From contig CAJFCJ010000014.1 in NCBI GenBank assembly GCA_904063045.1, positions 1,237,643 through 1,301,642 on the forward strand: a DNA stretch of 64,000 nucleotides, in the 5' to 3' direction. Below are positions 19,494 to 51,700 of the stretch, in pieces. The DNA comes from Dimorphilus gyrociliatus. Its lineage: Eukaryota > Animalia > Annelida. The notes below the pieces were generated by a model. That model saw nothing but the letters and a program-made list of their open reading frames with translations, was not told where the DNA came from and ran no database searches. The position numbers were made by a program, and so were the translations under genes. Numbering within the stretch: the stretch's first letter is position 1; each line of letters opens with the position of its first letter.

Positions 19494-21020
19494 ATGTCAG
19501 GAGTACAAAAGAAAGCAAAAAAACCACGTTATGGAATTTTAGGAGTTAAGAAAACAGATAGAATATTTTTTTCAGCTGCGGGAGAAGATTGGTCCTCAGA
19601 TTCGGAAGATGACGATTATCACCCACCAGGCGAAGATGAAATTGTTGAAATTAACACAAAGAAACGAAAACAAGAGAGAAGAAAGAAACAAGCTATTATT
19701 AAAGAAGAAAAGAAAAAGGGAAAGATTGATATCAAATTAAAACAGGGGATAACTACGTGGCACCTTCTACCACCGGAAATTTTAGTTAAAATATTAAAAT
19801 TTTGTTCAATGAACGAAGGTCATCTCAGACTTGATGTATTAGGTACAGTTTGTAACGATTGGAAGAGAGTAGCCCGTACAGAATCATTATGGAAGTATGT
19901 TGATTTAGCTAGAGGATCGGAAATGCTAAATAAAAAAGATTTAGAATCAACATCTAAAAAACTTTACCCTCTGATGCGTAAAACAGAAAGAATAGTACTT
20001 AACAAATCAATTACGATGTCGCAATTCACAAATTTGATACGAAATTTCCAAGAAATTCGTGAAATCTCTTTCAAAGGTTGTTCCAAATTAAAACCTGAAT
20101 TATTAACAGAAATTGCGGAATCGGGAAATTTAAAAAATTTACAAGGCGTCGATTTTAATGGAACGTTTCAAGATTTTATTGGATTGAAAGATATGTTTGT
20201 ATTCATCAATAATATCTTACCTAACTTGACAAAATTAGTCTTGTCAAATAACAAGTTTAACAAAAAAACAATAACAGCAATCTTTCAAAAGGTTGCATCC
20301 GATTGCACAAAACTCAAAATATTTGAACTGGAAAATTGCCATTCATCCGCAATACCTCAGCTAGATTACCTAAGCATGTGTAAAAATTGCCGTTCGTTGA
20401 GAGTGTTGAATTTCAACGATACTCTATTCCATCCATTTAATTCGTCAGGAAATAGTCAAAATGATGAAACAACGTATAAACTTAACCTTGAAGAATTCAG
20501 AATGAGTCAATTTCTTCATGTTAATATTTATGTTTCTCCCTCGTTTATTACAGATTTTATTGGGATGTGTGACAATCTAACTTTACTCGATGTTAATCAT
20601 TTGCGTAATTGCAACAGTTTCAACTTTCTACTCAAATTACATGCTCAAAAATTGAAACATCTGTATCTTAGTAATACCTTTACTAAGAATTTGGTCGATG
20701 ATCTAGAAATGGAATTACAAGTTAGACAAGTGTTTTCAAGATGGGGACCGTCTTTGTTAGATTTGGATCTATCCAAGAATCTTTTGCCAAGTACCGTTTG
20801 GGATGCTATTTTTGATAGTTTCGGACCAAATCCCTCATTAATAACATTAAATTTGGAAAGTAGTAATATAGCTATAGACACTTTAGATTATATTATGAAA
20901 ACCTTTCATAAACTACGTTACGTAAATATAAGTTTATGCCGAACTATCAGAGAGAGAGGAATTAAGAGAGAGTATCAAGCCGAAGAGATAAACATCCTTC
21001 GAAGTAAATTCTATTCCTAA
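19494..21020 (+). CDS. F-box/LRR protein, FBXL6-like paralog 1 (intronless, 508 aa)
   Basis: F-box WHLLPPEILVKILKFC...WKRVARTESLWKYVDL followed by LRR strands (LTKLVLSNN, LRVLNFNDT, LLDLDLSKN, LRYVNISLC). Acidic/basic N-terminus with WSSDSEDDDY and KKRK. Confidence 0.85.
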   Translation: MSGVQKKAKKPRYGILGVKKTDRIFFSAAGEDWSSDSEDDDYHPPGEDEIVEINTKKRKQERRKKQAIIKEEKKKGKIDIKLKQGITTWHLLPPEILVKILKFCSMNEGHLRLDVLGTVCNDWKRVARTESLWKYVDLARGSEMLNKKDLESTSKKLYPLMRKTERIVLNKSITMSQFTNLIRNFQEIREISFKGCSKLKPELLTEIAESGNLKNLQGVDFNGTFQDFIGLKDMFVFINNILPNLTKLVLSNNKFNKKTITAIFQKVASDCTKLKIFELENCHSSAIPQLDYLSMCKNCRSLRVLNFNDTLFHPFNSSGNSQNDETTYKLNLEEFRMSQFLHVNIYVSPSFITDFIGMCDNLTLLDVNHLRNCNSFNFLLKLHAQKLKHLYLSNTFTKNLVDDLEMELQVRQVFSRWGPSLLDLDLSKNLLPSTVWDAIFDSFGPNPSLITLNLESSNIAIDTLDYIMKTFHKLRYVNISLCRTIRERGIKREYQAEEINILRSKFYS

Positions 21021-21987
21021 AAAACTTGTTTACAAGAAATATTTTGGCTTACACTTTGGATTTGTTGTTTTTCTTTTATAGATTATAATATTACTACTTT
21101 TACCAACTAGCGCCATCTATGTTATGAAACTGTTAAAGGATATGGTCTATTTATTTTTTATGTTAGATTGATTAGTGGTTTTTAAAAAAAAACTTTGTTT
21201 TTGTAAAGCGTGAAAGGAAAGAGATGATAAAGTATTTGCTGCAAAAAAACGTGTATTTGTTTTTCATGCTGCTGAAATTTTTATTTATTGCGTAATAACA
21301 AAAAAAATAGAGAGAGAGAGAGAGAGAAAGAATGACATTGAAAAATATGTTAATATTTGCATATTAAATATTAAACTTAATTGTGTGGTGTTTTTTCCAA
21401 GAGTTGGTGTGTTTAACAAATTATGTTCTATTTAAGAGAATATTGAGTGTTTTATACGATAATACGATGTTTTCACTAATCCAATTGGAAAAATATAAAA
21501 AATAATTCTTTTTCACAAGTGTTTATAGGTTTAATTGCTTTGCGGAGGTTGAATAACTTACTTTTACTTTTGTTGGAACATTTGTTCAACAAGAGCACTT
21601 TTAATATAATATTCCTTTTATTTTGGTTTTATTTATACTTTTTTTTTATATATTTAATTGAAATGTTTCGTAAATAAATTTATTTACAGTCGATATATTA
21701 TAGGTATTACCAGTTTATAGTTTGTTTATTAGATTATTTTACCTTTATCCGGCTTTAACTAAAGGAAAATTAGTTTTTACTTAAATTTCACTTGAATTAT
21801 TTTAAATTAAACTCTAAAGCTTTTTTAATTTACAGAGTTTTTATATCTTTTTTTTTATCCAACTCAAATAGTGTAATACTCTGACGATACTTGAATATAC
21901 TTTCTAATTTTCGTCAACTTCCTGTTCAATTTTCTGATTTATGGCTTAAAAAAATACCGTTAGAATAATAATACTCATAACTAAAAG

Positions 21988-23430
21988 ATGACTAGACAAG
22001 GAAGAAGACGGCGTGGATTATTAAAGAGAAAATTTAAGGAGACTGAAGAGCAAATGAAAGAAATTAACTATATTAGAGATCTGCATTTGAGAAAAAACCT
22101 GAAGGATGTAGTAGAGATACAATCATGCCTACCTCCTGAAATTTTGGTAAAAATATTCGGCTATTGCGCCACAAACGAGGGAAATTTAAGTCTGTTTAAG
22201 TTAGCCAATGTCTCATCGGGCTGGGAAAAGTTAATCAAGTCTAAATGCTTATGGAAATGTGTGGATCTCGTAGAAGGTGTTGAAAATCTAACAATTGAAA
22301 AATGGAAGTCAATGAGAAAGACGTTTGTACCCCTTCTTAGGGAAAGCAAAAAAGTTCGTCTCAACACATCAATCATAACGACTAGATGGGATAATTTCTT
22401 TTTTAATTTTCCATCCGTCACCGAAATATCATTTGTAGGAACAAGAAATCTTCGGCCGGAAGTTCTTCTCGATATTATTCATTCCAAAATTAAAATTGAA
22501 TCTCTCAACTTTGACGGTGTATTCTTAAGCTTTATCCCGTCAAAGATTATTCGTAAAATGGCTACAACTATATTACCTAGTCTAAAGAAGCTAGTACTAT
22601 CCAACAACTCTTTATATATAACAGCTATTGAAGTACTGTTTAAAGTAGTGGGTCAGAGTTGTGAACAGCTGGAAGTATTGGAATTAGAGAATTGTTTACC
22701 TCCGAATAGGATTGCCGTCCCAGAATTAGATTATAGTTCAATACGTCGTAATTGCCGTTCTTTGAGAGTATTGAATTTTAGTTTTACTTTTATCGATCCT
22801 CAAATTCCCAAAACAGTATATCCACAGAACGATACATTGGATTTACGAGAACTTCATATGGGCAGTACTATCCGTTCTTATCGACGTTTTGGAGATAACT
22901 TCTTACTAGATTTTGTCGGTAATTGTAAGAATTTAGAGACAATCAATGCTAATTATTTACCAAACTGCAATAGTCTACATTTCCTACAAAAAATTAAGGC
23001 GAAAAGAATGAAAAATTTGTATATTTGTAATATTTTTAATGGAAAATACGATATACAAGCTATTACCTCTCAAGCTACAATCGTATTCGGTAGATGGCAG
23101 TCAACACTATTAACGTTAGACCTATCAAGGAATATTATGATAGATTCACTTTGGTTAACAATATTTGAATCGTTCTGTAAAGACTCACCACTTGAAACTT
23201 TATATCTAAATTGTAGTAATATAACAACAAGACCGTTCATAACTGCCATTAAACAATTTACAAATCTATCATATCTTGATACATCGTATTGCACGAATAT
23301 TATCGAAAGAAGTTTAAGGCAAAAGTTTTATAAAGAAGATTGTAAGAAACTTAAAGTAAACTATTTTTGGTTTGACAATCCCTTATATAATATTCAAAGA
23401 AATTCTGAATACTTTATAGACATTATATGA
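21988..23430 (+). CDS. F-box/LRR protein, FBXL6-like paralog 2 (intronless, 480 aa)
   Basis: F-box SCLPPEILVKIFGYC...LWKCVDL and LRRs (LKKLVLSNN, LRVLNFSFT, LLTLDLSRN) collinear with paralog 1. Confidence 0.85.
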   Translation: MTRQGRRRRGLLKRKFKETEEQMKEINYIRDLHLRKNLKDVVEIQSCLPPEILVKIFGYCATNEGNLSLFKLANVSSGWEKLIKSKCLWKCVDLVEGVENLTIEKWKSMRKTFVPLLRESKKVRLNTSIITTRWDNFFFNFPSVTEISFVGTRNLRPEVLLDIIHSKIKIESLNFDGVFLSFIPSKIIRKMATTILPSLKKLVLSNNSLYITAIEVLFKVVGQSCEQLEVLELENCLPPNRIAVPELDYSSIRRNCRSLRVLNFSFTFIDPQIPKTVYPQNDTLDLRELHMGSTIRSYRRFGDNFLLDFVGNCKNLETINANYLPNCNSLHFLQKIKAKRMKNLYICNIFNGKYDIQAITSQATIVFGRWQSTLLTLDLSRNIMIDSLWLTIFESFCKDSPLETLYLNCSNITTRPFITAIKQFTNLSYLDTSYCTNIIERSLRQKFYKEDCKKLKVNYFWFDNPLYNIQRNSEYFIDII

Positions 23431-24148
23431 AGATGTATTGAATTGTTTTTAATTGTCATTTTTTTTTCCTATTAAATAAAGTATGCAAATTAATTGTAGA
23501 CAAAAGAATGAAACAATGTAACTCCTTTTTAAAAGCGAACGAAAAAAGATTACCCTAAAACAAACACTTAAACATATTTGGTAATATCAATGCTTAAAAA
23601 AAGAACAGCGATAATATAACATTCTAAAAGGGAATTCATAGAAAGCGGGAAATATTTTTTTACCAGTTTTTTTTGAAAACTGTCACTTATTGGCTTATTA
23701 CTATTGTTTGCCAATTAAGCCGTTAGGTGTCAGCTGATACAGAAAATCTCGTAAATTTTTTTTTAAATTGTCGGATAAAAGTCAAAGAAGTTGTTACCAG
23801 GTATGTTAAATATTATTATTGAAATTTCTGATTAGTTTTGCAACAAATGCGTTACGCAAAAAAGTTACCGACATTCTAATCACCGGAAAACAACTATTAT
23901 TACAAGGCGGTTGATGTCTAGGATTAAAATGTACGAGAGCACACATTAAAGCTTATAAATTGGTATTTAAATGAACTTTGCATATATAATCAATGTTTAT
24001 ATTTAGAGCTGAGTATTTTTTTTACTGTTATAAACTTTCATTTAGCATATTTCTGTAATTGACGATTTTATGTACCGTCAGCTACCAATCAGCACTTTCG
24101 TACAATTTCCGGTGTCGTTTTCCTGAAGGAGAAAAATTTTGCTTTATT

Positions 24149-25549
24149 ATGACTGGTACAAAAGACAAAACTAGACAAAGACAACGGAGGAAAAAGACTT
24201 CCTATCATATTAAATCTACTAATGATAGATTAAACACGTTTACGATAAAAGGGGAGTCAAACAAGAGCGGTCAATTAGTTCCAGTAGCCAGCTGGAATTG
24301 TTTACCAATCGAAATTCAAGTAAAAATAATTCATCAGTGTGCGTTGAATGAAGGACATATAAGATTGTTTACATTGGCAAACGTTAATAGCGAATGGAGA
24401 CGGATAATCTCAACTGATTCTTTATGGAAAGATGTTGATTTAGCGAAAGGAACTGAAAAAATACCTGAAAGAGATTTGCACCTAATGACTATATATCTAT
24501 ATCCACTGTTGGATAAGAGTCGAATTGTACGATTCAATAGATCGATTACTGATCAAAACCTTCAAAATTTCACAAATAGCTTTAGCAATATCAGAGAGTT
24601 GATCTTTGAAAAGTATAGCTGTCTCCATCAGACAGTATTATTGCAAATTTCTAAAAATAATCTATTCGATCATTTGATATCTCTAAATCTCACAGGAGCT
24701 ATTGAAGGATCCATATCAAGACCGGTAATGAAAGCATTTATCGATCATGTATTACCAAAACTGAAAAAGCTAGTACTGTCAAACAACTTTCATAAATTGG
24801 ACAGTTTTGAAATGCTATTAGAATATATCTGCACTAAAAGTAATAAATTAGAAATTTTGGAATTAAGCAATTGTCTTCCCAGTGATTTGGGTTCGTTTGC
24901 TAGATTTCAATTTCATTTAATGCGAGAGAATTGTGTAAATTTGAAGGTGTTGAATTTAAGTAATACTTATATTAATCCCGTTCCAAGTTCAACCCTCACG
25001 AACACGGGTGAAAATTTTGATCTAAAAGAATTCTATATGAGCCGTTCAATACATTCCAAATGTAATGGTTCTGAAGAATTTCTAGTCGATTTTATAGGCA
25101 GCTGTAAGAACCTAGAAGTTCTTGATGTTAAATATCTGCCGAATTGTTGCAATTTTGATTTTTTACTTTTTTTGCAAACTGATAAATTGAAATATTTATG
25201 CGTTAGTCATGTGATAAGTTCTATTCCTATTGGACAGGATTTTGCTATTATACAAGTTTCTATTGCTTTCGCTAGATGGAGACATACGTTGTTGGTTTTA
25301 GATATGTCTCAAAATGAATTGTATAGATCTAGTTGGATGGCTATTTTGGAGGGTCTTGGAAGGAATCCAGTTCTCAAAGAGCTATATTTAGAGGGCAGTA
25401 ATATAACTTTTGATGCCGTTAAATTCGCATTAAGGAGATTTACTAATCTGGAGTGTTTAGATCTCCGATCCTGCAATAACATAATGTATCCAAAGCTCAT
25501 TAAAAAGTTCCAAGGAGAGAGTCTGAATGCTCTAAGAAGACAGTTTTAG
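24149..25549 (+). CDS. F-box/LRR protein, FBXL6-like paralog 3 (intronless, ~466 aa)
   Basis: First in-frame ATG at 24149 (the ORF track starts at an upstream TTG). F-box WNCLPIEIQVKIIHQC...LWKDVDL and LRRs LKKLVLSNN, LKVLNLSNT, LLVLDMSQN. Confidence 0.85.
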   Translation: MTGTKDKTRQRQRRKKTSYHIKSTNDRLNTFTIKGESNKSGQLVPVASWNCLPIEIQVKIIHQCALNEGHIRLFTLANVNSEWRRIISTDSLWKDVDLAKGTEKIPERDLHLMTIYLYPLLDKSRIVRFNRSITDQNLQNFTNSFSNIRELIFEKYSCLHQTVLLQISKNNLFDHLISLNLTGAIEGSISRPVMKAFIDHVLPKLKKLVLSNNFHKLDSFEMLLEYICTKSNKLEILELSNCLPSDLGSFARFQFHLMRENCVNLKVLNLSNTYINPVPSSTLTNTGENFDLKEFYMSRSIHSKCNGSEEFLVDFIGSCKNLEVLDVKYLPNCCNFDFLLFLQTDKLKYLCVSHVISSIPIGQDFAIIQVSIAFARWRHTLLVLDMSQNELYRSSWMAILEGLGRNPVLKELYLEGSNITFDAVKFALRRFTNLECLDLRSCNNIMYPKLIKKFQGESLNALRRQF

Positions 25550-40146: not shown

Positions 40147-41400
40147 ATGTGTGAGAATTTCGACATGTTCGACATGAAAGATATTAGTTACGAAGTTTAT
40201 AAGGTTGGTTCAAATATTATGGAAGTTGACCTAGAAGAACTGAGGTTGAAGGTATTCGAAGCCAACCATCCTGTAATAGAAATACCATTAATTTTTCAAA
40301 ATTTTCCTGCTATAGATAAACCTCTAAATCCTTTTCTAAACGTTCACGATCACATTATGATTAAAACATGTTTAGAACCAATTTTCCTCAATATATTATC
40401 CAATTCGAAATTTAGAGAAAAGAGATTTTACAATACACTTAAAGAACTGTACGAAAATGATAATTCACTTAATAAATATGTTACAAGGAGGAAATTAGGA
40501 AGATTTTGTACAGCTCAAGAATATTTCATAAAATATAGAATACTTATGGCAAAAAAATACTTTGAGGAATCATTTTTCGGTTGCGGAAATTCTAAAAATG
40601 TATTTTTAGAATACTTAACGGAAGAAATAAAGAATGATAAGAATTGGGATAAAGTTGAAGAGATACTAATTCCAATTGTTAATCCATATACAACTTTGAC
40701 AAAATCCGTCAGATTAAATGGTATTAACGCTAAACAATATTTCGCTATTCAATACCGAATAATGCATATTATCACAAGACTTATTGAAGATTCTAATCAA
40801 CCATTAGAAGATATTATAAATATAGGATTTTTTGATATTAAGTATAAAGTTTGTTTCAATACAACTGAAATAGTTACATCTATTATCGGTCAATCTGAAA
40901 TAAATCCATTGGCAACCTATAATACTGTATATTTAGGTTCATATAACGAAATTTCAAAGGCATTTCAAACTACAGGATATCATAATAATTACGAAACTAA
41001 CTTGATAATGGAAATGATTATTTTCAGTGCAACTGGAATTCCCATCGATCCTGAAGATATTTTAATATCAAGTTATCCTTGCAAATATACAGAAACATTA
41101 AATGAAATATCTTTTATAGTTTTGTTTGAACAAATCTCGATATGGCTTACAAATTCTGACTTAAGTAATGACTTACGTTTGCCTATAGCTCATGCAAAAT
41201 GTATTCTTCTATTGGAAACTGGTTATCTACAACTAGAAGAAGTCTTTAAAAAGAATTCACTCTACGGTATTTTCTCTAAAGGTGACATCAGAAATAGGAA
41301 TGATAGTATTAAACGTACAATAAAGAGGATAGAAGAGGTTTTCTCTAATAAAATGGGTCATATTACCGACGAAGCAGTACTTGAAAGAGTTTACGGATAA
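40147..41400 (+). CDS. Orphan family member A (417 aa, intronless)
   Basis: Long ORF in AT-rich DNA. Shares GINAKQYFAIQYRI, IFSATG, PIAHAK and the terminal TDEAVLERVYG with the neighbouring ORFs. Confidence 0.8.
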   Translation: MCENFDMFDMKDISYEVYKVGSNIMEVDLEELRLKVFEANHPVIEIPLIFQNFPAIDKPLNPFLNVHDHIMIKTCLEPIFLNILSNSKFREKRFYNTLKELYENDNSLNKYVTRRKLGRFCTAQEYFIKYRILMAKKYFEESFFGCGNSKNVFLEYLTEEIKNDKNWDKVEEILIPIVNPYTTLTKSVRLNGINAKQYFAIQYRIMHIITRLIEDSNQPLEDIINIGFFDIKYKVCFNTTEIVTSIIGQSEINPLATYNTVYLGSYNEISKAFQTTGYHNNYETNLIMEMIIFSATGIPIDPEDILISSYPCKYTETLNEISFIVLFEQISIWLTNSDLSNDLRLPIAHAKCILLLETGYLQLEEVFKKNSLYGIFSKGDIRNRNDSIKRTIKRIEEVFSNKMGHITDEAVLERVYG

Positions 41401-41756
41401 GATCAAACAAACAATTAGCTGACAATAAAATATTTAATTAATATCAGAAAAGATAAATGAATAAAAAACGCTTTTCGTTTATTATAATATAGTCTTTGTA
41501 ACAAACTATAGTCTTTAAATTCAATAGCTACAATCAGTAGTTATAAGGCAAATCAAAGGCATTGTCTAAATCTATGGTTATTCTAATTTTAGTATCCATT
41601 TTGAATCTGATGAATATTGATGATTTATTTTTAGGCCTACAAATTATATTTTGACGAGATATCAACATTAAAACAGTTTCGAGTGTAATATATAATAAGA
41701 CAAGTTAAATTGTACTGATTGTTGAATTAAAAAGCTTTTTTTAAACGATTAAAGTT

Positions 41757-42689
41757 TTATTCGCCAAATACTTTTTCCATATCTTGAATTTGTTGTTGTT
41801 TATCGTCCTTTTTACCATTTAAAACTCTTTTAATATACTTTTTATTAATCTTTTTCATTTTTGCCATAACTAGACAACTTTTACTTTCTTTATCCTTGTT
41901 ATATTTTATCAATGATTTTGATTTCTTATTCCAATTTCTCCATAAATTTTCACCTGTAAATATTCCGTATTTTGAATTTGGAGCAAAGACATCTTTCATT
42001 CTTAACACACCTAATTTAATTAGGATCATCGATCGAGCATGAGCAACTGCAAGAGGTTGATTATAATTTTCGTGTTCTGGTAGAAACCATTGAGGTATTT
42101 CCTTAAAGAAAATCTTAAAGCATATTCTATTGATCTTATCCGTTAGATTTATTAACTTTTCTTCATCGTAGCCAATGCAGATTTTGTTGAGATCTTCTCT
42201 AGAGATTTCTATACCCGTTCTACTAAAGTCTATAAAGTGGCAAACAAGCTTTTGTTCCGTCGATTTATTGTCCTTTGTTATTTCTTTGATTGTTTTAAAT
42301 ATATCGCTATAATCTGCAACGTCTTCAATTAGACAAGAACCTTTTCTATCAGATTCCGAAGTTGTTTTTTGCTGGAATGTTATGCTTGTTGTACCAAATG
42401 TAATCGTTGTGGGTTTAGTATACATCATATTAAGGCTACTCTCCTTATAAGGTAGTACGATGAAATTAGGACAAAGAGTTCTTTTCATCCTCGCATCAAA
42501 GTTTTCCAATAAAACTTTCATCTCGAATGCAAAATATTTCCTGGCGTTGCATCCTCTCAAACTGATAATTCCTTGTAAATATGGTTCATTCGTTTGATTC
42601 CTAATATATAGAAACGATTTCCATATTTTATCGTCATCTTCGTTAAAGTTTCCCAATGGACATTTAACAAATTCAATAACCACTGACAT
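41757..42689 (-). CDS. Orphan family member B (310 aa, intronless)
   Basis: GCNARKYFAFE, DFSRTG, and PLAVAHAR...GVLRMKDVFAPNSKYGIF align with member A (PIAHAK...GYLQLEEVFKKNSLYGIF). Confidence 0.75.
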   Translation of the reverse strand: MSVVIEFVKCPLGNFNEDDDKIWKSFLYIRNQTNEPYLQGIISLRGCNARKYFAFEMKVLLENFDARMKRTLCPNFIVLPYKESSLNMMYTKPTTITFGTTSITFQQKTTSESDRKGSCLIEDVADYSDIFKTIKEITKDNKSTEQKLVCHFIDFSRTGIEISREDLNKICIGYDEEKLINLTDKINRICFKIFFKEIPQWFLPEHENYNQPLAVAHARSMILIKLGVLRMKDVFAPNSKYGIFTGENLWRNWNKKSKSLIKYNKDKESKSCLVMAKMKKINKKYIKRVLNGKKDDKQQQIQDMEKVFGE

Positions 42690-43516
42690 TATCCCCGTTC
42701 AAATCTATTAATCTATTAACTGAGTAAAATAAATTTCTATCTTTATGATAGAAAAATAAATAGAGCGTATCTGATAATAAGAGTTGTAAATACAAGTGTT
42801 TTTTCATTATCTTGCAATGGAATGCTATTATTATTAGTATTAATATCTTTACTAAAAGAGAGTAAAATTGATTCTAGAATTATGTTTATTGTTAGTTTCT
42901 TTTATATTTTATCTTATCATATCAACTATTTATCTATCTTTTTTTATATTCTGTAAAATTAAGGTGTTTGTCAAAATAAAAACAATAAATTTACAACTAG
43001 ATTTATTCAAAGGTGTTTCTTACTATATAATATATTCCAATATATTTTGTAATAGCATATAGAGTCATAGTAAGTGATACCTTTAGATATTATCTTTTAA
43101 GCCTTTTGTTAAAGTAGTGTATTGCATAAATATACATATTCACAGGCTCTACTCAGCAAACAAAACAATAGAATATTTAAATGTCAAGGATATTCTATAA
43201 ATACTTTAGGCTTTTAGACAAAAATTATACCATTATGTTAAATACTACAAACTCAACATTCATGCTTAATTAACGAAAATAAAGTACAACGAAAATTCCT
43301 TTTATATTTGTCATAGTTGCTTTTTTTTACTGACTGAAAAGTATAGAACAAGTACTGATATTGATTATTCAATATACAGTATATACAGTATATATATATA
43401 TATATTTATATTGAACTGTTTAATATTGTTAAATAAACTATTCGAAAATAGGTTGAACATCTAACATATTACTTGTTTTCTCTTGATAAATACTTCATAA
43501 AAACCCCTCATAAATA

Positions 43517-44628
43517 ATGGTAATTATACTATATTCTACAATAATCATAACAATATTGATACATTTCTTTTACAGGATGTATCTACAAAGAAATCTTATA
43601 GTATCGAATCTTATGTGCAAGATCATATTAAACCAATCGAAAGGGATATCATTGGAAAAGACAAAATTAATTTAACAGATATCGCAACAAGTTTCAGCTA
43701 TCATTTTCAATCTAAAGATTGCTTTGTTGGAAACGAAGAGAATATTGGTAAACATCTACAATCAATTTTCTTTCGAATATTACAAAATCGTAAACTTTAT
43801 GAGGAAATTAAGAAGGAAGATATTCAATTTGATAAATGGAAAAAATTCTGTCAAGCTTACGAATATTTCCTTAAATATCGTATTAAACTTGCCAAATATG
43901 ATTTTAATACCATATTTATTAAAAAACAAACAAATGATACATTCCTTAATTATTTAAAACCTGATATTATTGGAGATAAACACTGGGATAAATTAGAAGT
44001 GTTATTATTGCAAAAGATTAATCCAAACTATTCAAAATTGTTCAATTTTATTGGTATGAATGCAAAGATATATTTCGCAATAGAATATCGAATTATGTAC
44101 ATTTTAAGAAGAATTTTAGAAGATGCTCAAGTAATTCCGCAAACTTATATTGAGTTTCAAGATCAGTCCGAGTACGATTATCATTTTATCCTTTTAAATC
44201 ATGATTATGAAATTAGATACGGAAATGCAAAGACTGGTTTTTCCGTGGGGAATATAAGACCGCATACCGCTTGTCTCGATCCAACAACTCCAAAACAATT
44301 TATAAAATTCAGTTCATCAGGAGTAGTTGATAGCATCACTGAAGAAGATATGGCCTGCTTTAAGGTATTATTTGAGAATGTTTCCAAACGAGTTTTTGGT
44401 AAAAATCGTAAATTTGCAACAAACATACCTATATTCTACGCAAAGCATCTGTTACTCAAATATCATAGTTCTTCGGAGAAAATTCAAGAGCATTCGAATC
44501 TTATCTTTCGAACAACCTTGATTAACGCCCTACGCTTAGGAGCAGCTTCTGAAGCTGATTTTGCGATAAACTTAAAAGGAAGAAATCTAACTGATGAAGA
44601 TGTTTTAAAGTTAGTTTACGGCCGTTAA
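43517..44628 (+). CDS. Orphan family member C (~351 aa)
   Basis: Probable ATG-only first exon (43517-43519, GT at 43520) spliced to 43576. Contains WDKLEVLLLQKINP, GMNAKIYFAIEYRIMYILRRILEDAQVI, KFSSSG and LTDEDVLKLVYG. Confidence 0.8.
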
Positions 44629-45199
44629 AAAAGACACAAATAACTAATTTTCTTTGAATGGCATCAATGTTGAATAATTAATTATAAATGATTATATATA
44701 AACTGTAGCAATTGCTTGCGTTCCGCAAAAGTTTACTGTATTATTATAATACATCTTATTATCGGTAGTTCTATATTATTTAGATTAGATTACTGAAAGA
44801 AAAGAAATTACACATTGTTCAGAGATGGATGCAATAAAAGAGTCTTGAATAAGAAGAATACTAACTGTTCAATAATTTAAAATGACTTTTATATTCTTAT
44901 AATACATTCTTTCAATTTTCAAAAGTCTCTATTAAACCTGATCTTTGGATATTTGATATTTTTATTTGTCTTCTTCGATTCATTTCCTCCTCCCTGTCTG
45001 ACCCTTTCTCCAGGCACAAAATTCTTATCTACGTTTGTTTTTTGCGTATAATTACGGTATAAGCCTATTTATGAGACGAAAGTCAAGTGTAATTATATTA
45101 TAATCACATTATCTGTCTATTTTTCATACAGGTAAGATAGAAATTGGTTAGTTCCGTACAGTCAAGCAACTATTGCGTTTATTACATTAAAATACAAAG

Positions 45200-46231
45200 A
45201 TGGACTGGAATTCTATGCTGTCTTGCGCTCAAGAGATTAATAAAGAATTCACAGAAAGTTTTGAATTAACTATAAAAAGTATTATTTTTAATTTTAATCG
45301 ATTGCCTTTGGAAGCTCTTTCTGAAGATTATAGATATATAATAGGAAAGAAACTGTCACCTACATTTTATCGCCTGTTACAAAATCAAAAACTCTACGAT
45401 GTTATAAAATCGCTACAACATGCTCCTAGTATAAAAGAAGATGTAACAGGATTCTTTACGGCTTACGAATGCTTCTTTGCGTATCGTATTCAACTCGCTA
45501 AGCAAGAGTTTGAATCAAAAGTTTCTAAACTGGAAACTTCCGATCCTTTCCTAAAATATTTGAGACCGACAATCATATGTGATGATCATTGGGATAAGGT
45601 TAATGGACTATTATTACAAAAAATTAATCCTTATTATACGAATTCATTCGATTTTAATGGTATGACTGCAAAGATTTATTTTGCAGTAGAATATCGAATT
45701 ATGTATATAATTAGAAGAATTTTCGAAGATGCTCAAGTGATAGAAAAATCAAAAATACAATTCGAAGATACCTCAGATACAGATTATAGCGTTGTGTTTA
45801 CTAATCCCAATTACCAAGTAAATTATAGTTATTTAGATAATCCATTAAAAAGAAAAAATGTTAGAAATAGCACAATAGGAAGGGAACGTGAATCTAAATT
45901 AATAATAACGTTCAGTTCCGCTGGAATTCTTTCTACAAGAACTGATTACGATTGCGTAAGTTTTCTGATAATGTTTGAAACGATTGCAAATTGGGTATTT
46001 GGTAAACAACGAAAATATGCTCAATCTATTCCTTTAACATTTGCAAAGCATTTCTTAATGGAATATCAAACTGAAGAAAAGAAAACTTTAGGTTGGTCTT
46101 TTGAAAATCTAATATACGATTTAGGTGTAACTATACGTGCTGGAGTTGATATTCGTACTAAATTCTTAATTCATTCAAAAATTAAACATCTAGATGATCA
46201 AGAAATCCTTAAACTTGTCTATGGACTTTAA
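45200..46231 (+). CDS. Orphan family member D (343 aa, intronless)
   Basis: Closest to member C: WDKVNGLLLQKINP, GMTAKIYFAVEYRIMYIIRRIFEDAQVI, TFSSAG, LDDQEILKLVYG. Confidence 0.8.
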   Translation: MDWNSMLSCAQEINKEFTESFELTIKSIIFNFNRLPLEALSEDYRYIIGKKLSPTFYRLLQNQKLYDVIKSLQHAPSIKEDVTGFFTAYECFFAYRIQLAKQEFESKVSKLETSDPFLKYLRPTIICDDHWDKVNGLLLQKINPYYTNSFDFNGMTAKIYFAVEYRIMYIIRRIFEDAQVIEKSKIQFEDTSDTDYSVVFTNPNYQVNYSYLDNPLKRKNVRNSTIGRERESKLIITFSSAGILSTRTDYDCVSFLIMFETIANWVFGKQRKYAQSIPLTFAKHFLMEYQTEEKKTLGWSFENLIYDLGVTIRAGVDIRTKFLIHSKIKHLDDQEILKLVYGL

Positions 46232-46552: not shown

Positions 46553-48715
46553 TTATTCTACTTCCGAAACATCACTACTGCCAGATCTTCTCTTTCTCCA
46601 AACATAATACCAAGTTAACCCAGCGAAACCAATAGCTATTGCTCCAGTAACTGCAATAGTTATTCCAATAGCAGCTTGCAGTCTACTCTGCCTTAAGCTC
46701 GATGTTTGTGGTTTATTCTTAGAATCTATTAGACTGCTATTTTTAAATATTACATGTGGGGAAGAACTGTCAGTTACATTCTCTTCATTATTCTTTATAG
46801 CTGCTTCTGCTGTAGTTTCAGCTTCTGCTGCAGAACTTACTTCAGCAGAACCTTTTCCAGTAGCCACTTCATTTTCCGCAGCTGGTGTATTTTCTGCCAA
46901 AGTTTCTGCAGTAGCTTCAGCTTCTGCTGCAGAACTTACTCCAGCAGAACCTTTTCCAGTAGCTACTTCATTTTCCGCGGCTGGTGTATTTTCTGCCAAA
47001 GTTTCTGCAGTAGCTTCAGCTTCTGCTGCAGAACTTACTTCAGCAGAACCTTTTCCAGTAGCTACTTCATTTTCCGCAGCTGGTGTATTCTCTGCCAAAG
47101 TTTCTGCAGTAGCTTCAGCTTCTGCTGCAGAACTTACTTCAGCAGAACCTTTTCCAGTAGCTACTTCATTTTCCGCAGCTGGCGTATTTTCTGCCAAAGT
47201 TTCTGCAGTAGCTTCAGCTTCTGCTGCAGAACTTACTTCAGCAGAACCTTTTCCAGTAGCCACTTCATTTTCCGCAGCTGGTGTATTTTCTGCCAAAGTT
47301 TCTGCAGTAGCTTCAGCTTCTGCTGCAGAACTTACTTCAGCAGAACCTTTTCCAGTAGCCACTTCATTTTCCGCGGCTGGCGTATTTTCTGCCAAAGTTT
47401 CTGCAGTAGCTTCAGCTTCTGCTGCAGAACTTACTTCAGCAGAACCTTTTCCAGTAGCTACTTCATTTTCCGCGGCTGGCGTATTTTCTGCCAAAGTTTC
47501 TGCAGTAGCTTCAGCTTCTGCTGCAGAACTTACTTCAGCAGAACCTTTTCCAGTAGCCACTTCATTTTCCGCGGCTGGCGTATTTTCTGCCAAAGTTTCT
47601 GCAGTAGCTTCAGCTTCTGCAGCAGAACTTACTTCAGCAGAACCTTTTCCAGTAGCTACTTCATTTTCCGCAGCTGGTGTATTTTCTGCCAAAGTTTCTG
47701 CAGTAGCTTCAGCTTCTGATGCAGAACTTACTTCAGCAGAACTTTTCTCAACAGCTGCTGTATTTTCCGCGGCTGGCGTATTCTCTGCAAAACTTTCTGC
47801 AGTTGTTTCTGCATCCACATCGGGAGTAATTTCTTCGAAATCTTCCTCAGTTGTTTCTGTGCTTGCTTTAGGAGTATCGGTTGTGCTTTCAGTTCCTTTG
47901 GGGTAAATAGTTATATCTTTCCACGGTCTGAAGGTATTTTTTATGGGGCCTGTTAGTGCATCGCTATCAATTCCAGAAGAAGATATAACAGAGTTTTCCA
48001 CAAGGGGATATTCGCAAATATATCCATGCGCAGTTCCAGCGTTTGTAAGAGCATAAAGTTCCACTTCACTTTTTCTGAATACTCTTAAGCTGACATATTT
48101 CAAATCGGAACTTTTAGTTAAAGTATTGGCAAAGATAGGAAGTTTAAACTCATAAAAGTCGTATAATCTCTTATTAGTATCCTGCCAAATCCAATGACTA
48201 TTATTGTAATATAAACCAGTCCAAAAGGATACATAATCTGATTTGATACTGGAAAAAAAGATACCTTATTGGAAAAATAGGATAAACAATAAAAAGGAGA
48301 TATTACGTAATAAATTTTAATTCACTCCTTATTGCATCAATAACTATTTTCAGGGAAGATTGATGGTTAAACGTCGCTACTTTTCCAGAATCTAGAGCAC
48401 ATTTATTCTTTGCCTCGTCGTGAGTTTTTGAAATAAAATTTCGCTACAGAATAAAAAAGAATGATGAATTTTTTTTTTGTATTAGAAAATAGAAAAAGAG
48501 TTACTGGAATTGAATTATCAATGCCTATTTTATATCCGAAACATTTATTTTCTAAGGCAATTTGATTATCTATGCAAGAAAAGTGCGAAGTCTGTTCAAT
48601 ACCATCTATAGCAAAACCTTTTGGGAAAACGAAATAGAATGTAATAACTTATAAAACTTTACTCTTTTTGTTTTTAATAAATACCAAACAAATAAATTAG
48701 AAAAAACATCAACAT
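46553..48715 (-). CDS. Type I membrane protein: C-type lectin-like domain, acidic tandem-repeat stalk, TM and short tail (4 exons)
   Basis: Exons 48715-48685, 48617-48505, 48443-48307, 48248-46553 in phase. Signal peptide MLMFFLIYLFG; CTLD hallmarks NKCF, AKNKC, FWTGL..HWIWQD, GYICEY; TM AAIGITIAVTGAIAIGFAGLTWYYVW followed by RKRR. Confidence 0.8.
46812..47812 (-). repeat. Coding 99-bp tandem repeat (9 near-identical units plus 1 degenerate; 33 aa)
   Basis: CTGCCAAAGTTTCTGCAG recurs at 46894, 46993, 47092 ... 47686 with exact 99-bp spacing. Unit: AEAEATAETLAENTPAAENEVATGKGSAEVSSA. Confidence 0.95.
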
Positions 48716-51700
48716 CGTCAGCTTCTTCTAACTTCCTTAAAATGTATTATTAACAACTAAATGACTACTTGAATTCATATGCTGAGTAGTTTTGTATTGT
48801 TTTTTTAATGTTCAACCTAATTCTAAGTCTAGTTGAGGATCTTTCTCTAACGACATCTAGTGTTTTAACTTTATTAATTTGAATTTTTTTGGTTATCGTT
48901 AAACGAATTATAAATATTAGAATTTAGAATTAGATACTGTTCATAGTCCGGTTTTGTTTTTTTAATAGTTTCATATATTAACTGAAGATGGCGTGCTCGA
49001 TTTGTTAAAAAGTCGTTTTAAGAGAGTATAGATGTTACAACTCTTTCAATTCATAAATTTTTTAGTAGAGTTTGAAAGCAATGGTGACTTTTTGAAAATA
49101 TATGAATGGAATGAGCGAGGGTTGCAAGTAACAATACAAAAATTCCTCTATTATTATATTCAAATTATTGTTCAGAAATAACTCTATCTAGGCCTTTCCA
49201 TATCTAGACATTAAAGCAAAGAAGCCTATTTAAAATTGTCGCAAGTTGAAAGTTCAATAAGCAGAATTTCTATCAATAAATATAAAGTAAAGGGAGTTTC
49301 TTTCCCGAAGAGCTTGTGACAAACTGAACAAAGATGAAAAGTTTCCAAGTAAATATCTTCATTAAGCATTAACTATACATATATATATAAAACATTATAT
49401 TTTCAGGTTTTATTCGTTTGTTTACCTACTTTTTCTTGTTTTTCTATATTTTTTAAATAAATTAACGATTTGAATATAAAAGATATAAAGGAAATTTTAC
49501 CTAAGGGAAGAGTAGTTGAAGGTGACGAAGAGATGAATTACGACAACGAAACTATCTCTTAAACCCAAGTACAATTTAAACTTTGCTCTTCTTATTGAAA
49601 GTCAATAAATATGTCAAAGAGACGACTCTCTTTTCAAATAATTCGATATGCAATGAATATTGAGGGCTGATGAGGGGTGGGACAGAGAAGAAGGGAATAG
49701 GAACAGGGCAACACAGAAACTAGTGACTAATCTAACAATTAATGGAAGTATTCCAAGTAAACGTTGTGCGTGAACTAGCAAATTGAATAGAGAACCATTC
49801 AGGTATTTAGCGAGTTAGTTCAAATAAGAAAAATGATAAAAACGCTCTCCAATACGCGTTTAATTCTATTAATACTTCTTATCATTGTTTAAATTAGATT
49901 TTAATGTATGCTTTAGTAATATAAATAATTTATTTATATAGATTCAATTAATATTATACTCATTCGACAAATAAAATTAATAGAAATAGTCATAAATTTC
50001 ATAAAAGTTCTTCCTATTCTATTATTTTTGAATAAGAATATTATAAATAAGAGTTAAATAAAAGAAAAAACAATCTAAATTTTATTAATTTCCATAAATA
50101 TATATATATATATTTGATATATATATACTCTACAGTGTTTATGACCTTTATCGACCTAGTTACACATAAACCTTTTCTATTTTTTTTCTAACACGTATAC
50201 TTTATACTAACTTTGCAATTATTACTATAAATATCTCTTCATTTCATTATCATTTAATCAGTGAAAGAAGATTCATATATATATATATATATAGATTCCT
50301 CGAATAAATAGAAACTAGTAGTCTTTCATTATCTTCTTTGGCTTTTTTTCATTTTCAAGATTCTCCTCTTCTAAATACGATTTAACCGCCTTCTATTCTT
50401 TCATTACTTCCACTTCTCTTGCCTTTTAATTTATATTCTCAAAGTGCATTAACCTTTAGGCAAAAATATATATCATTTATGATAATATAGTCTAAATCAT
50501 ATAATAAATACAGCAGTTTATAAACTATTAATAGGACTATATTGGTTATAAATTAACTAGTTAAGTAATTAAGTAATTAGTTAAATTTTTATGTAAATAT
50601 ATAGATATTTAATTTATTCTAAACTCTATTTTTTTAAACCTTCTCTTGTTCTTCAAACAATGAAATTGATATTTTTTTAATTGATTTTTTACTTCTATAT
50701 TAAATAAAAGAGAGAAAGAATAGACGAAGAAGAAGAAGAAGAGACTAAAGAAGATTGATTGAGTGAATGAAATGAATATTATCTATTCAATCCTAAAACT
50801 TGAAACTATTAGTTAAGTTACTAAGCATTTAAAAGTTTATTTTATAAGACAAGAATAAATATTACTTAATATTTAAACTGTCATTTAACCTTTAAGACAT
50901 TATTCTATACAACTAAAAAGCTTTAATTCTATTTTTAAATAGGCTTTATTACAATATAGTGTTAAAGTAGATCTTTGTTACATCATCTTTATCTATATAT
51001 TGTATAAGTCCCTTTATTCAACAAAATTCACTTTAAATTTGATAACTAGTAATAAAATATATGATTATAACGTAATAAATGCTGCTTTGGTGATGATATA
51101 CGTAATAATTTAATGGATTAAGATGATAAATTGCGGACAGCTTGTATATATTAATTATTTATCTCATATTTTAGAAATATTTTTCATATTTTTAATTAAT
51201 CTTTTCCACCTTTTTTTCTTTCTATTTCACCTCTCTCTCTCTCTCTTTGTTCTCTTTCCTATCATTAATTTCATTTACTATGCGTAAGTTGCAATTCTTT
51301 ATCATTATCAATTACTGTTCGTTGTTGTATTATCGCAAGATTTTGCACTCGCCAAGGTAGATACTATTGCATATCTTAATTAGGAAGGGAAATATTACGT
51401 AGATTTCTATTTTTTAAAAGCTTAGATTGATTTATCTAAAGAATTTCTATTTATAGTTTTTTAAGGAATTTTATGCTTCTCTCTCTCTCTCTCTCTCGCT
51501 CTCGTCAATAATTTTATACCCCAAAGCTAAGATTATCGTTTAAATATATTCAATAGTCTAACGTAATTTGAATAATTATTCAATAGTCTTAAAAATAGGT
51601 CTATTTACTTGTACCGGTAAAAAATAGTTGCCTTGTAATAAAAAAAAGAGAAAAAACAAGAATTATTATTATTAATTAAAGAAGGAAATTACATAATACT

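Follow-up and report, generated by a model that had tools for sequence, protein, structure and literature searches.

A tandem gene cluster in the annelid Dimorphilus gyrociliatus with a core domain of probable bacterial origin

Four adjacent genes of the very small marine worm Dimorphilus gyrociliatus share a domain that could be assigned to no family from the sequence, which raises the question of where this domain came from and what it may do in an annelid. The genes, named A to D, lie between 40 and 46 kb of the window, which is the whole stretch of 64,000 nucleotides analysed here (Table 1). An earlier note on this DNA had described them as four almost intronless orphan ORFs (+,-,+,+) that arose by local duplication, evolve fast and are possibly of horizontal or viral origin.

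Table 1. Positions of the cluster genes and their parts in the window
Feature	Position	Strand	Description
Gene A	40147..41400	+	417 aa, single exon; identical to annotated NCBI protein
Gene B	41757..42689	-	310 aa, single exon
Gene C, exon 1	43518..43520	+	Start codon ATG alone
Gene C, intron	43521..43575	+	55-nt GT-AG spliceosomal intron
Gene C, exon 2	43576..44628	+	ORF 43615-44628; derived copy
Gene D (DgyrCDS9943)	45200..46231	+	343-aa ORF; derived copy, like C
Gene D, in-frame GT-AG segment	46092..46193	+	102 nt

All four ORFs are present and intact, and stop-free frames of these lengths are not expected by chance, since P(no stop) in AT-rich DNA ranges from 3e-11 to 6e-15. The four proteins align over their full length with approximately 30% identity and 23 invariant columns, and the common motifs that had been proposed are all found in the same order (G-x-N/T-A-K/R-x-Y-F-A, F-S-x-x-G, F-x-V/I-x-F-E/K, P-I/L-x-x-A and a terminal V-Y/F-G), as are the blocks specific to A and B and to C and D. 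The description as almost intronless is also correct. The model of C with its intron agrees with the annotated 351-aa protein P0002, whose 14 extra N-terminal residues fit this model. The in-frame segment of D is removed as an intron in the public gene model, although coding sequence of C is homologous to it. Gene A is composed of a helical N-terminal extension followed by the core domain. An oddity in the alignment had hinted at an internally duplicated N-terminal helix in A, C and D, but this idea was rejected because self-BLAST gave no significant match. The genome-wide check of copy number showed that scaffold C5 carries a fifth paralogue and C90 a degraded fragment. Genes A to D are confirmed as real paralogues in D. 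gyrociliatus, in support of local duplication.

The worm genes belong to the nuclear genome and are inherited. The cluster is located in the middle of a 2.2-Mb scaffold among genes encoding a nuclear receptor, an ABCA transporter, F-box/LRR and PDZ proteins, and its GC content of 27-30% is similar to that of the flanks, giving the genes a host-like AT content. Spliceosomal introns are present in the family (in C, and in D by the public model). Collinear orthologues of the cluster genes are found in contigs of a related species from independent runs, all of them Logan runs; these include orthologues of A and C in L011 (57% and 62% identical, respectively) and a syntenic orthologue of D in L009. 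The proposal of fast evolution stands in part, as the orthologues are merely 48-62% identical, but their dN/dS of 0.03-0.36, with dS saturated, indicates purifying selection. The cluster genes are also probably expressed. Mean counts for DgyrG9940, 9941 and 9943 are 255-505 in the differential-expression tables of the genome paper, where early embryos and hatchling females show high levels of DgyrG9940 and 9943 and late embryos show low levels (PMC7854359 supplement); placing these gene numbers at the locus relies on DgyrG and DgyrCDS numbers being the same, and the number is directly seen for D alone.

A profile built from the five worm proteins was searched against 1.84 billion representatives, eukaryotic proteomes included, and it provided 152 matches at E<=1e-3, 39 of them at E<=1e-10. 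Seven of the 152 are worm-type. The remainder, approximately 145 clusters, consists mostly of proteins of 500-870 aa in which the domain is matched in the C-terminal part, and 32 bacterial-type clusters were matched at E 1e-16 to 1e-10. The only other record filed under a metazoan among the 152 matches is attributed to a rotifer, and it is a bacterial-type, frameshifted copy. Alignment of the four window proteins with nine bacterial domains by hhalign gave a probability of 98.9% (E 1.5e-17), and BLASTP analysis of B showed 30% identity to the bacterial protein P0012 across 185 aa (E 2e-24). B exhibits 27-31% identity to many bacterial domains versus 16-27% to its own paralogues. The significant homology covers a core of approximately 250 residues, from an R/K-x-x-[IF]-[TA]-[AIFV]-E motif to a C-terminal I-N-x-L-Y region, and the HMM alignment places the first of the motifs listed above on the bacterial R-x-x-I-T-A-E motif.

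No curated library recognises this domain, in line with the earlier note. The worm proteins showed only sub-threshold DUF matches in Pfam, and no match was obtained in NCBIfam, PHROGs or PDB sequence profiles. PADLOC matched a single member to an unnamed candidate model at E 0.002, which was disregarded. The ESM Atlas feature search gave no match for C or for one bacterial domain, and a word-index search with D found D itself only. The orphan label nevertheless fails, because the domain recurs in approximately 145 clusters of relatives, of which the members placed on contigs are bacterial. Nor is there support for a viral origin, as neither PHROGs nor the viral structures of BFVD gave a match, and horizontal transfer now explains the family best, the closest non-worm relatives being bacterial with no other animals among them. 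The domain represents a new family without a Pfam model, found in approximately 145 bacterial-type clusters of mostly uncultured or unnamed sources.

Contigs were identified for five bacterial-type matches; context served for two of them and the record title for four, with one traced by both. Two members are located on contigs of 173 kb and 22 kb with bacterial operons, while a search with nine closer alignment rows gave four carrier loci in MAGs titled Gammaproteobacteria or proteobacterium. The four named carrier genomes, of uncultured bacteria, are small (1.1-3.2 Mb) and have Dot/Icm type IVB secretion genes, with IcmL and IcmK clustered in 4/4 carriers versus 0/14 control genomes. The domain is present in one of 86 genomes of one carrier's order, and since G001 alone matched within its own order, the four carriers span more than one order. 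The bacterial members feature N-terminal TPR/Sel1 or ankyrin repeats followed by the domain, and examples such as P0151, P0012 and P0028 are annotated merely as "hypothetical" or "TPR repeat protein". Secreted host-targeting effectors are usually built in this way, from repeats with a C-terminal domain, and from this architecture we infer that the bacterial proteins are probably of effector type. No conserved neighbour or immunity gene was found beside the bacterial homologues across the four loci. The worm proteins differ in that they are without the N-terminal repeats (no TPR, Sel1 or ankyrin repeat was matched in the four window proteins), their genes have introns and a host-like base composition, and A, C and D carry substitutions at the conserved Glu, Arg and Tyr positions.

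Nearly invariant among the bacterial domains are Gly, Tyr, Glu, Lys-Glu, Arg, Gly, Phe and Tyr, and all of these are shared by B and the C5 copy. B retains R50, E56, G117, Y127, E145, K196-E197, R219, G227, F235 and Y285, and it is, judged by its sequence, the most bacterial-like copy. In the alignment table used for scoring, whose columns 169-175 are misaligned for A, C and D as a result of the alignment oddity, A retains E283, G359 and F367, with K-E changed to E-Q, R to K and Y to F; C has its conserved Glu replaced (E-N), Arg changed to Lys and the G..F..Y block lost, and D likewise exhibits a replaced Glu, Arg changed to Lys and loss of the G..F..Y block. The conserved set of Arg, Glu, Tyr, Glu, Lys-Glu, Arg and Tyr points to a putative enzyme, and the earlier suggestion of an enzyme or effector family is plausible. 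B and the C5 copy are candidates for retained activity because they keep the full set, while A, and especially C and D, are more probably putative non-catalytic binders or regulators.

Structural prediction and structure searching, which the earlier note had proposed, gave a usable model of B. AlphaFold with the five worm sequences alone reached a pLDDT of 44 and was unusable, whereas the addition of 128 further homologous segments, which are almost entirely bacterial-type, led to a pLDDT of 85.9 for B (model m4db16149c7b3). All structural matches in PDB (Foldseek), BFVD and the atlas (TM<=0.34) were below significance, so the domain has no significant structural relative. The sole structural lead is a weak whole-domain resemblance, also below significance, to rRNA N-glycosidases, the ribosome-inactivating proteins or RIPs (PF00161; ricin A chain, saporin, pokeweed antiviral protein). 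This weak likeness consists of an N-terminal sheet plus helices in the same order and a long central helix that ends in a conserved Glu. For the Tyr/Tyr/Glu/Arg/Trp active site of RIPs, there are hints at the level of sequence. The domain could be a very diverged member of the RIP fold, in which case B and the C5 copy would be toxins or defence enzymes of the N-glycosidase type, but this reading is doubtful. None of 61 members matched a RIP profile in Pfam at E<=10, and PDB sequence searches found no RIP. A RIP fold concerns function only and is compatible with transfer from a bacterium to the worm. A further possibility, rather unlikely, is that a new, very diverged RIP-like N-glycosidase branch, or another host-targeting enzyme, serves intracellular bacteria as an effector payload, with B and the C5 copy, catalytically competent after transfer, acting in defence or as toxins in the worm and A, C and D as their partners or antidotes. 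If that were so, a toxin-antidote or germline-protective system would agree with what appears to be maternal, early-embryo and female expression.

A branch with SH-aLRT 90 (not starred) separates all worm-type rows of the phylogenetic tree from the 126 other, bacterial-type rows. Because it has no root and places the worm clade within no particular bacterial clade, the tree is silent on the direction of transfer. Direction, like function, is inferred from the remaining evidence, and the core domain of the worm family was probably acquired from a bacterium by horizontal transfer and then duplicated in the worm. Acquisition of host genes is known for Dot/Icm bacteria, and many eukaryote-like effector domains of Legionella were captured in this way. 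The domain might thus have arisen in eukaryotes, in dinophilids or in unsampled hosts, and have been captured by intracellular bacteria, a scenario that gains from the single branch between worm and bacterial sequences, which leaves the root open, and from the high divergence of the worm family itself. It is improbable, given that the eukaryotes among the 152 matches are limited to dinophilid-type contigs and the one rotifer record, whereas the bacterial members are many and deeply divergent, come from sources that the record titles suggest are unrelated, and include four named carriers from more than one order.

Vertical descent of an ancient animal domain, lost or diverged past recognition outside dinophilids, is very improbable. 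Rapid divergence could mask relatives, as B and C are only approximately 18% identical, but the same profile detects bacteria at E 1e-17 to 1e-10 and no other metazoan, and losses would be needed in essentially all other sampled animals. Bacterial contamination or an assembly artefact, which would also place the closest non-worm relatives in bacteria, is effectively refuted by the mid-scaffold position amid metazoan genes, the host-matching GC, the spliceosomal introns, the missing bacterial repeat region and the collinear orthologues in independent runs of another species.

Under transfer from a bacterium, a single event would have brought the domain without its repeats into the worm lineage before D. 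gyrociliatus split from a related species. The donor was likely of the type of Legionellales-style intracellular Gammaproteobacteria with a Dot/Icm system. Tandem duplication, intron gain, adaptation to the host base composition and divergence would have followed.

Animal genes that originate from bacterial toxins or effectors include the RIP genes of mosquitoes and whiteflies and cdtB in insects. The worm genes resemble these cases in that a bacterial domain of cytotoxin or effector type has become a fixed part of an animal's nuclear genome, where it has acquired introns, been duplicated and stayed restricted to one lineage. They differ in that the domain is another, uncharacterised one, the recipient is an annelid and the likely donor is of the Dot/Icm (Legionellales) type. 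The genome paper discusses no transfer, and the phrase "horizontal gene transfer" is found there in one reference title alone (PMC7854359). The cluster appears to represent a previously undescribed transfer from a bacterium to an animal, into an annelid.

In bacteria the domain is attached to repeat modules typical of secreted effectors. The worm paralogues constitute a natural experiment, in which two copies keep the conserved residue set and three have lost it, and this contrast could inform the role of the domain both in bacterial infection biology and after its probable capture by an animal.

The four genes (A–D) were found precisely where the earlier note had placed its ORFs, and each of the shared motifs listed there was present in their alignment. 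The proteins can be aligned over their full length with approximately 30% identity and 23 invariant columns, so the observation as a whole was confirmed. At this base composition, the chance probability of an open frame of 310–417 codons is 3e-11 to 6e-15. The annotated C protein has 14 additional residues, consistent with the one-codon exon model. The public protein entry for D is named DgyrCDS9943 [Dimorphilus gyrociliatus], after the annelid from which the window comes, and the record of a fifth copy is filed under that organism too.

Coordinates of the family members and other features (window positions unless a contig is named)
Feature	Position	Strand	Description
F-box + leucine-rich-repeat genes	19494–25549	+	Three in tandem; 508, 480 and 496 aa
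Gene A	40147–41400	+	Single exon; identical to annotated protein
Gene B	41757–42689	-	Single exon; identical to annotated protein
Gene C	43518–44628	+	Two exons
Gene C, exon 1	43518–43520	+	One codon, then 55-nt GT-AG intron
Gene D	45200–46231	+	
Gene D, in-frame GT-AG segment	46092–46193	+	102 nt; removed by splicing in public model
Repeat ORF	46553–48103	-	516 aa; about nine near-identical tandem repeats, about 33 residues each
Conserved blocks	49211–49957 and 51480–51617		65–85% (translated) against related-species contig L009; downstream of D
Fifth copy, scaffold C5	L005:1378–2388		B-like paralogue
Fragment, scaffold C90	L006:1498–1915 (G000)		Related to the C5 copy
Rotifer-filed gene	L025:1441–3578		Didymodactylos carnosus contig CAJNOK010003454.1

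NCBIfam, PHROGs and PDB sequences provided no match to the family, Pfam gave sub-threshold DUF matches only, PADLOC a single negligible match, and a word-index search retrieved D alone. An exhaustive profile search against a library of 1.84 billion representatives identified 152 proteins at E≤1e-3 (39 at E≤1e-10), which corrects the earlier description of the genes as orphans. The best seven matches comprise the five worm proteins, or gene models of them, and orthologues from another species. The remaining matches are mostly 500–870 aa in length, with similarity confined to the C-terminal 170–250 residues; the N-termini of the bacterial-type matches contain TPR/Sel1 repeats or, in one case, ankyrin repeats. 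Homology of the worm proteins to these bacterial domains is robust: an hhalign comparison of the four window proteins with nine bacterial domains gave a probability of 98.9% (E 1.5e-17), and B exhibits 30% identity to the bacterial member P0012 across 185 residues (E 2e-24). B is 27–31% identical to many bacterial domains, compared to 16–27% to its own paralogues. The worm–bacterial alignment starts at the first motif of the earlier note, the counterpart of R-x-x-I-T-A-E in bacteria, and continues as far as the C-terminal helix, taking in the F-S-x-x-G, F-x-x-x-F-K-E and A-H/Q-A-R motifs.

Four carriers were identified among the species-representative genomes scanned, with record titles of Gammaproteobacteria or proteobacterium MAGs, genomes of 1.1–3.2 Mb and a GC content of 37–39% at the locus. 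Two members lie on contigs of 173 kb and 22 kb whose genes are plainly those of bacteria, with a biotin operon, RHS repeats and an ETF-QO gene among them. IcmL/DotI and IcmK/DotH are core components of the Dot/Icm type IVB secretion system, and their genes are clustered in 4/4 carrier genomes versus 0/14 controls. The domain is patchy, occurring in 1/86 genomes of one carrier's order, so the remaining three carriers belong to other orders. No conserved neighbour gene is common to the four carrier loci, and there is therefore no obvious immunity partner. Judged by its architecture, the bacterial version fits a secreted host-targeting effector, since it is a stand-alone, patchily distributed gene of Dot/Icm bacteria in which eukaryote-like repeats and a conserved C-terminal module are fused.

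In the worm, the genes belong to the nuclear genome, are inherited and evolve under constraint. They lie mid-scaffold amid metazoan genes (those for a nuclear receptor, an ABCA transporter and a PDZ protein, and the F-box/LRR trio), and their GC content of 27–30% is the same as that of the surroundings. Orthologues A' (57% identity), C' (62%) and D' (43–48%) are encoded on contigs of a related AT-rich species, obtained from independent sequencing runs. The contigs and the window are collinear: A' adjoins C', and the conserved blocks recur downstream of D'. With dN at 0.25–0.44 and dS saturated, dN/dS is 0.03–0.36 by every estimator, which means purifying selection. In the supplementary tables of the genome paper (PMC7854359), DgyrG9940, DgyrG9941 and DgyrG9943, which represent A, B and D only on the assumption that gene and CDS numbers coincide, have mean normalised counts of 255–505; the counts for DgyrG9940 and DgyrG9943 are lower in late than in early embryos and increase once more in hatchling females.

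The conserved blocks downstream of D probably represent exons of a neighbouring gene that is itself conserved. Ala, Glu, Thr and Ser are abundant in the repeats of the 516-aa ORF, which also has a hydrophobic C-terminal segment; the predicted product resembles a mucin-like membrane protein. In L009, the syntenic interval is shorter by approximately 1.9 kb, and the related species may accordingly lack this gene or carry a shorter version. With the F-box/LRR trio, the window holds a second local gene expansion. Rfam provided no match within 38–53 kb of the window.

A profile search across the whole D. gyrociliatus assembly identified the fifth paralogue and the C90 fragment, which is short, contains three in-frame stop codons and is a decayed sixth copy. 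The related species encodes two additional members, P0022 (334 aa) and P0035 (287 aa), on contigs L022 and L023/L024 (runs SRR23372215, SRR23372229 and SRR23372216). Neither has a counterpart in the D. gyrociliatus assembly and the A'–C' interval of related-species contig L011 holds no counterpart of B; copy number therefore turns over between species.

The AlphaFold model of B (136 sequences) is confident (pLDDT 85.9, pTM 0.87) and predicts an N-terminal part made up of helices and sheet, after which comes a helical part whose long central helix spans residues 176–196. Structural searches with this model returned nothing significant from the PDB by Foldseek (E>2), from BFVD (E≥1) or from the atlas (TM≤0.34). 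Near-invariant residues of the bacterial domains are a Gly, a helix-opening Tyr and a Glu, together with the Lys-Glu with which the long helix ends, an Arg in the helix after it, and a Gly, Phe and Tyr. All of these are conserved in B and the C5 copy, which on that ground would be expected to have kept any activity that the bacterial domain possesses. In A, E-Q replaces K-E (Q-E in A'), Lys replaces Arg and Phe replaces Tyr. C and D have the Glu replaced, Lys for Arg and the G..F..Y block missing; they are probably non-catalytic derivatives.

In an unrooted maximum-likelihood tree of 136 domains, the worm-type sequences all fall on one side of a branch (SH-aLRT 90) with the other 126, bacterial-type rows opposite. 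A/A', C/C' and D/D' pair as expected for orthologues, and B and the C5 copy are at the base of the worm group. Being unrooted, the tree does not give the direction of transfer, which is instead indicated by distribution: numerous bacterial-type lineages, deeply divergent and drawn from more than one order, with record titles suggesting unrelated sampling sources, versus a single small animal lineage; in the profile-search library, which contains eukaryotic proteomes, no other eukaryote was found bar one rotifer record. Transfer from a bacterium to the worm is thus the likely course. The reverse, bacterial capture of a eukaryotic domain, is compatible with the unrooted topology though improbable, and ancient vertical descent is very improbable. 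The horizontal origin suggested in the earlier note is supported with a bacterial source; the viral source also suggested there was not borne out by PHROGs or by the BFVD search with B.

The rotifer record, from Didymodactylos carnosus, is the only other one filed as animal. A Fringe-like glycosyltransferase gene is located 6 kb from it. The gene encodes a full-length TPR-plus-domain protein, 40% identical to a bacterial member, with the frame broken near L025:3170–3240; the public model bridges the break by a spurious 65-nt intron, deleting the most conserved motif. It may represent a recent, separate acquisition, or else DNA of a symbiont.

The fixation and expansion of a bacterial toxin- or effector-type gene in an animal is an event of a known kind; new here are the domain itself, the recipient and the type of donor.
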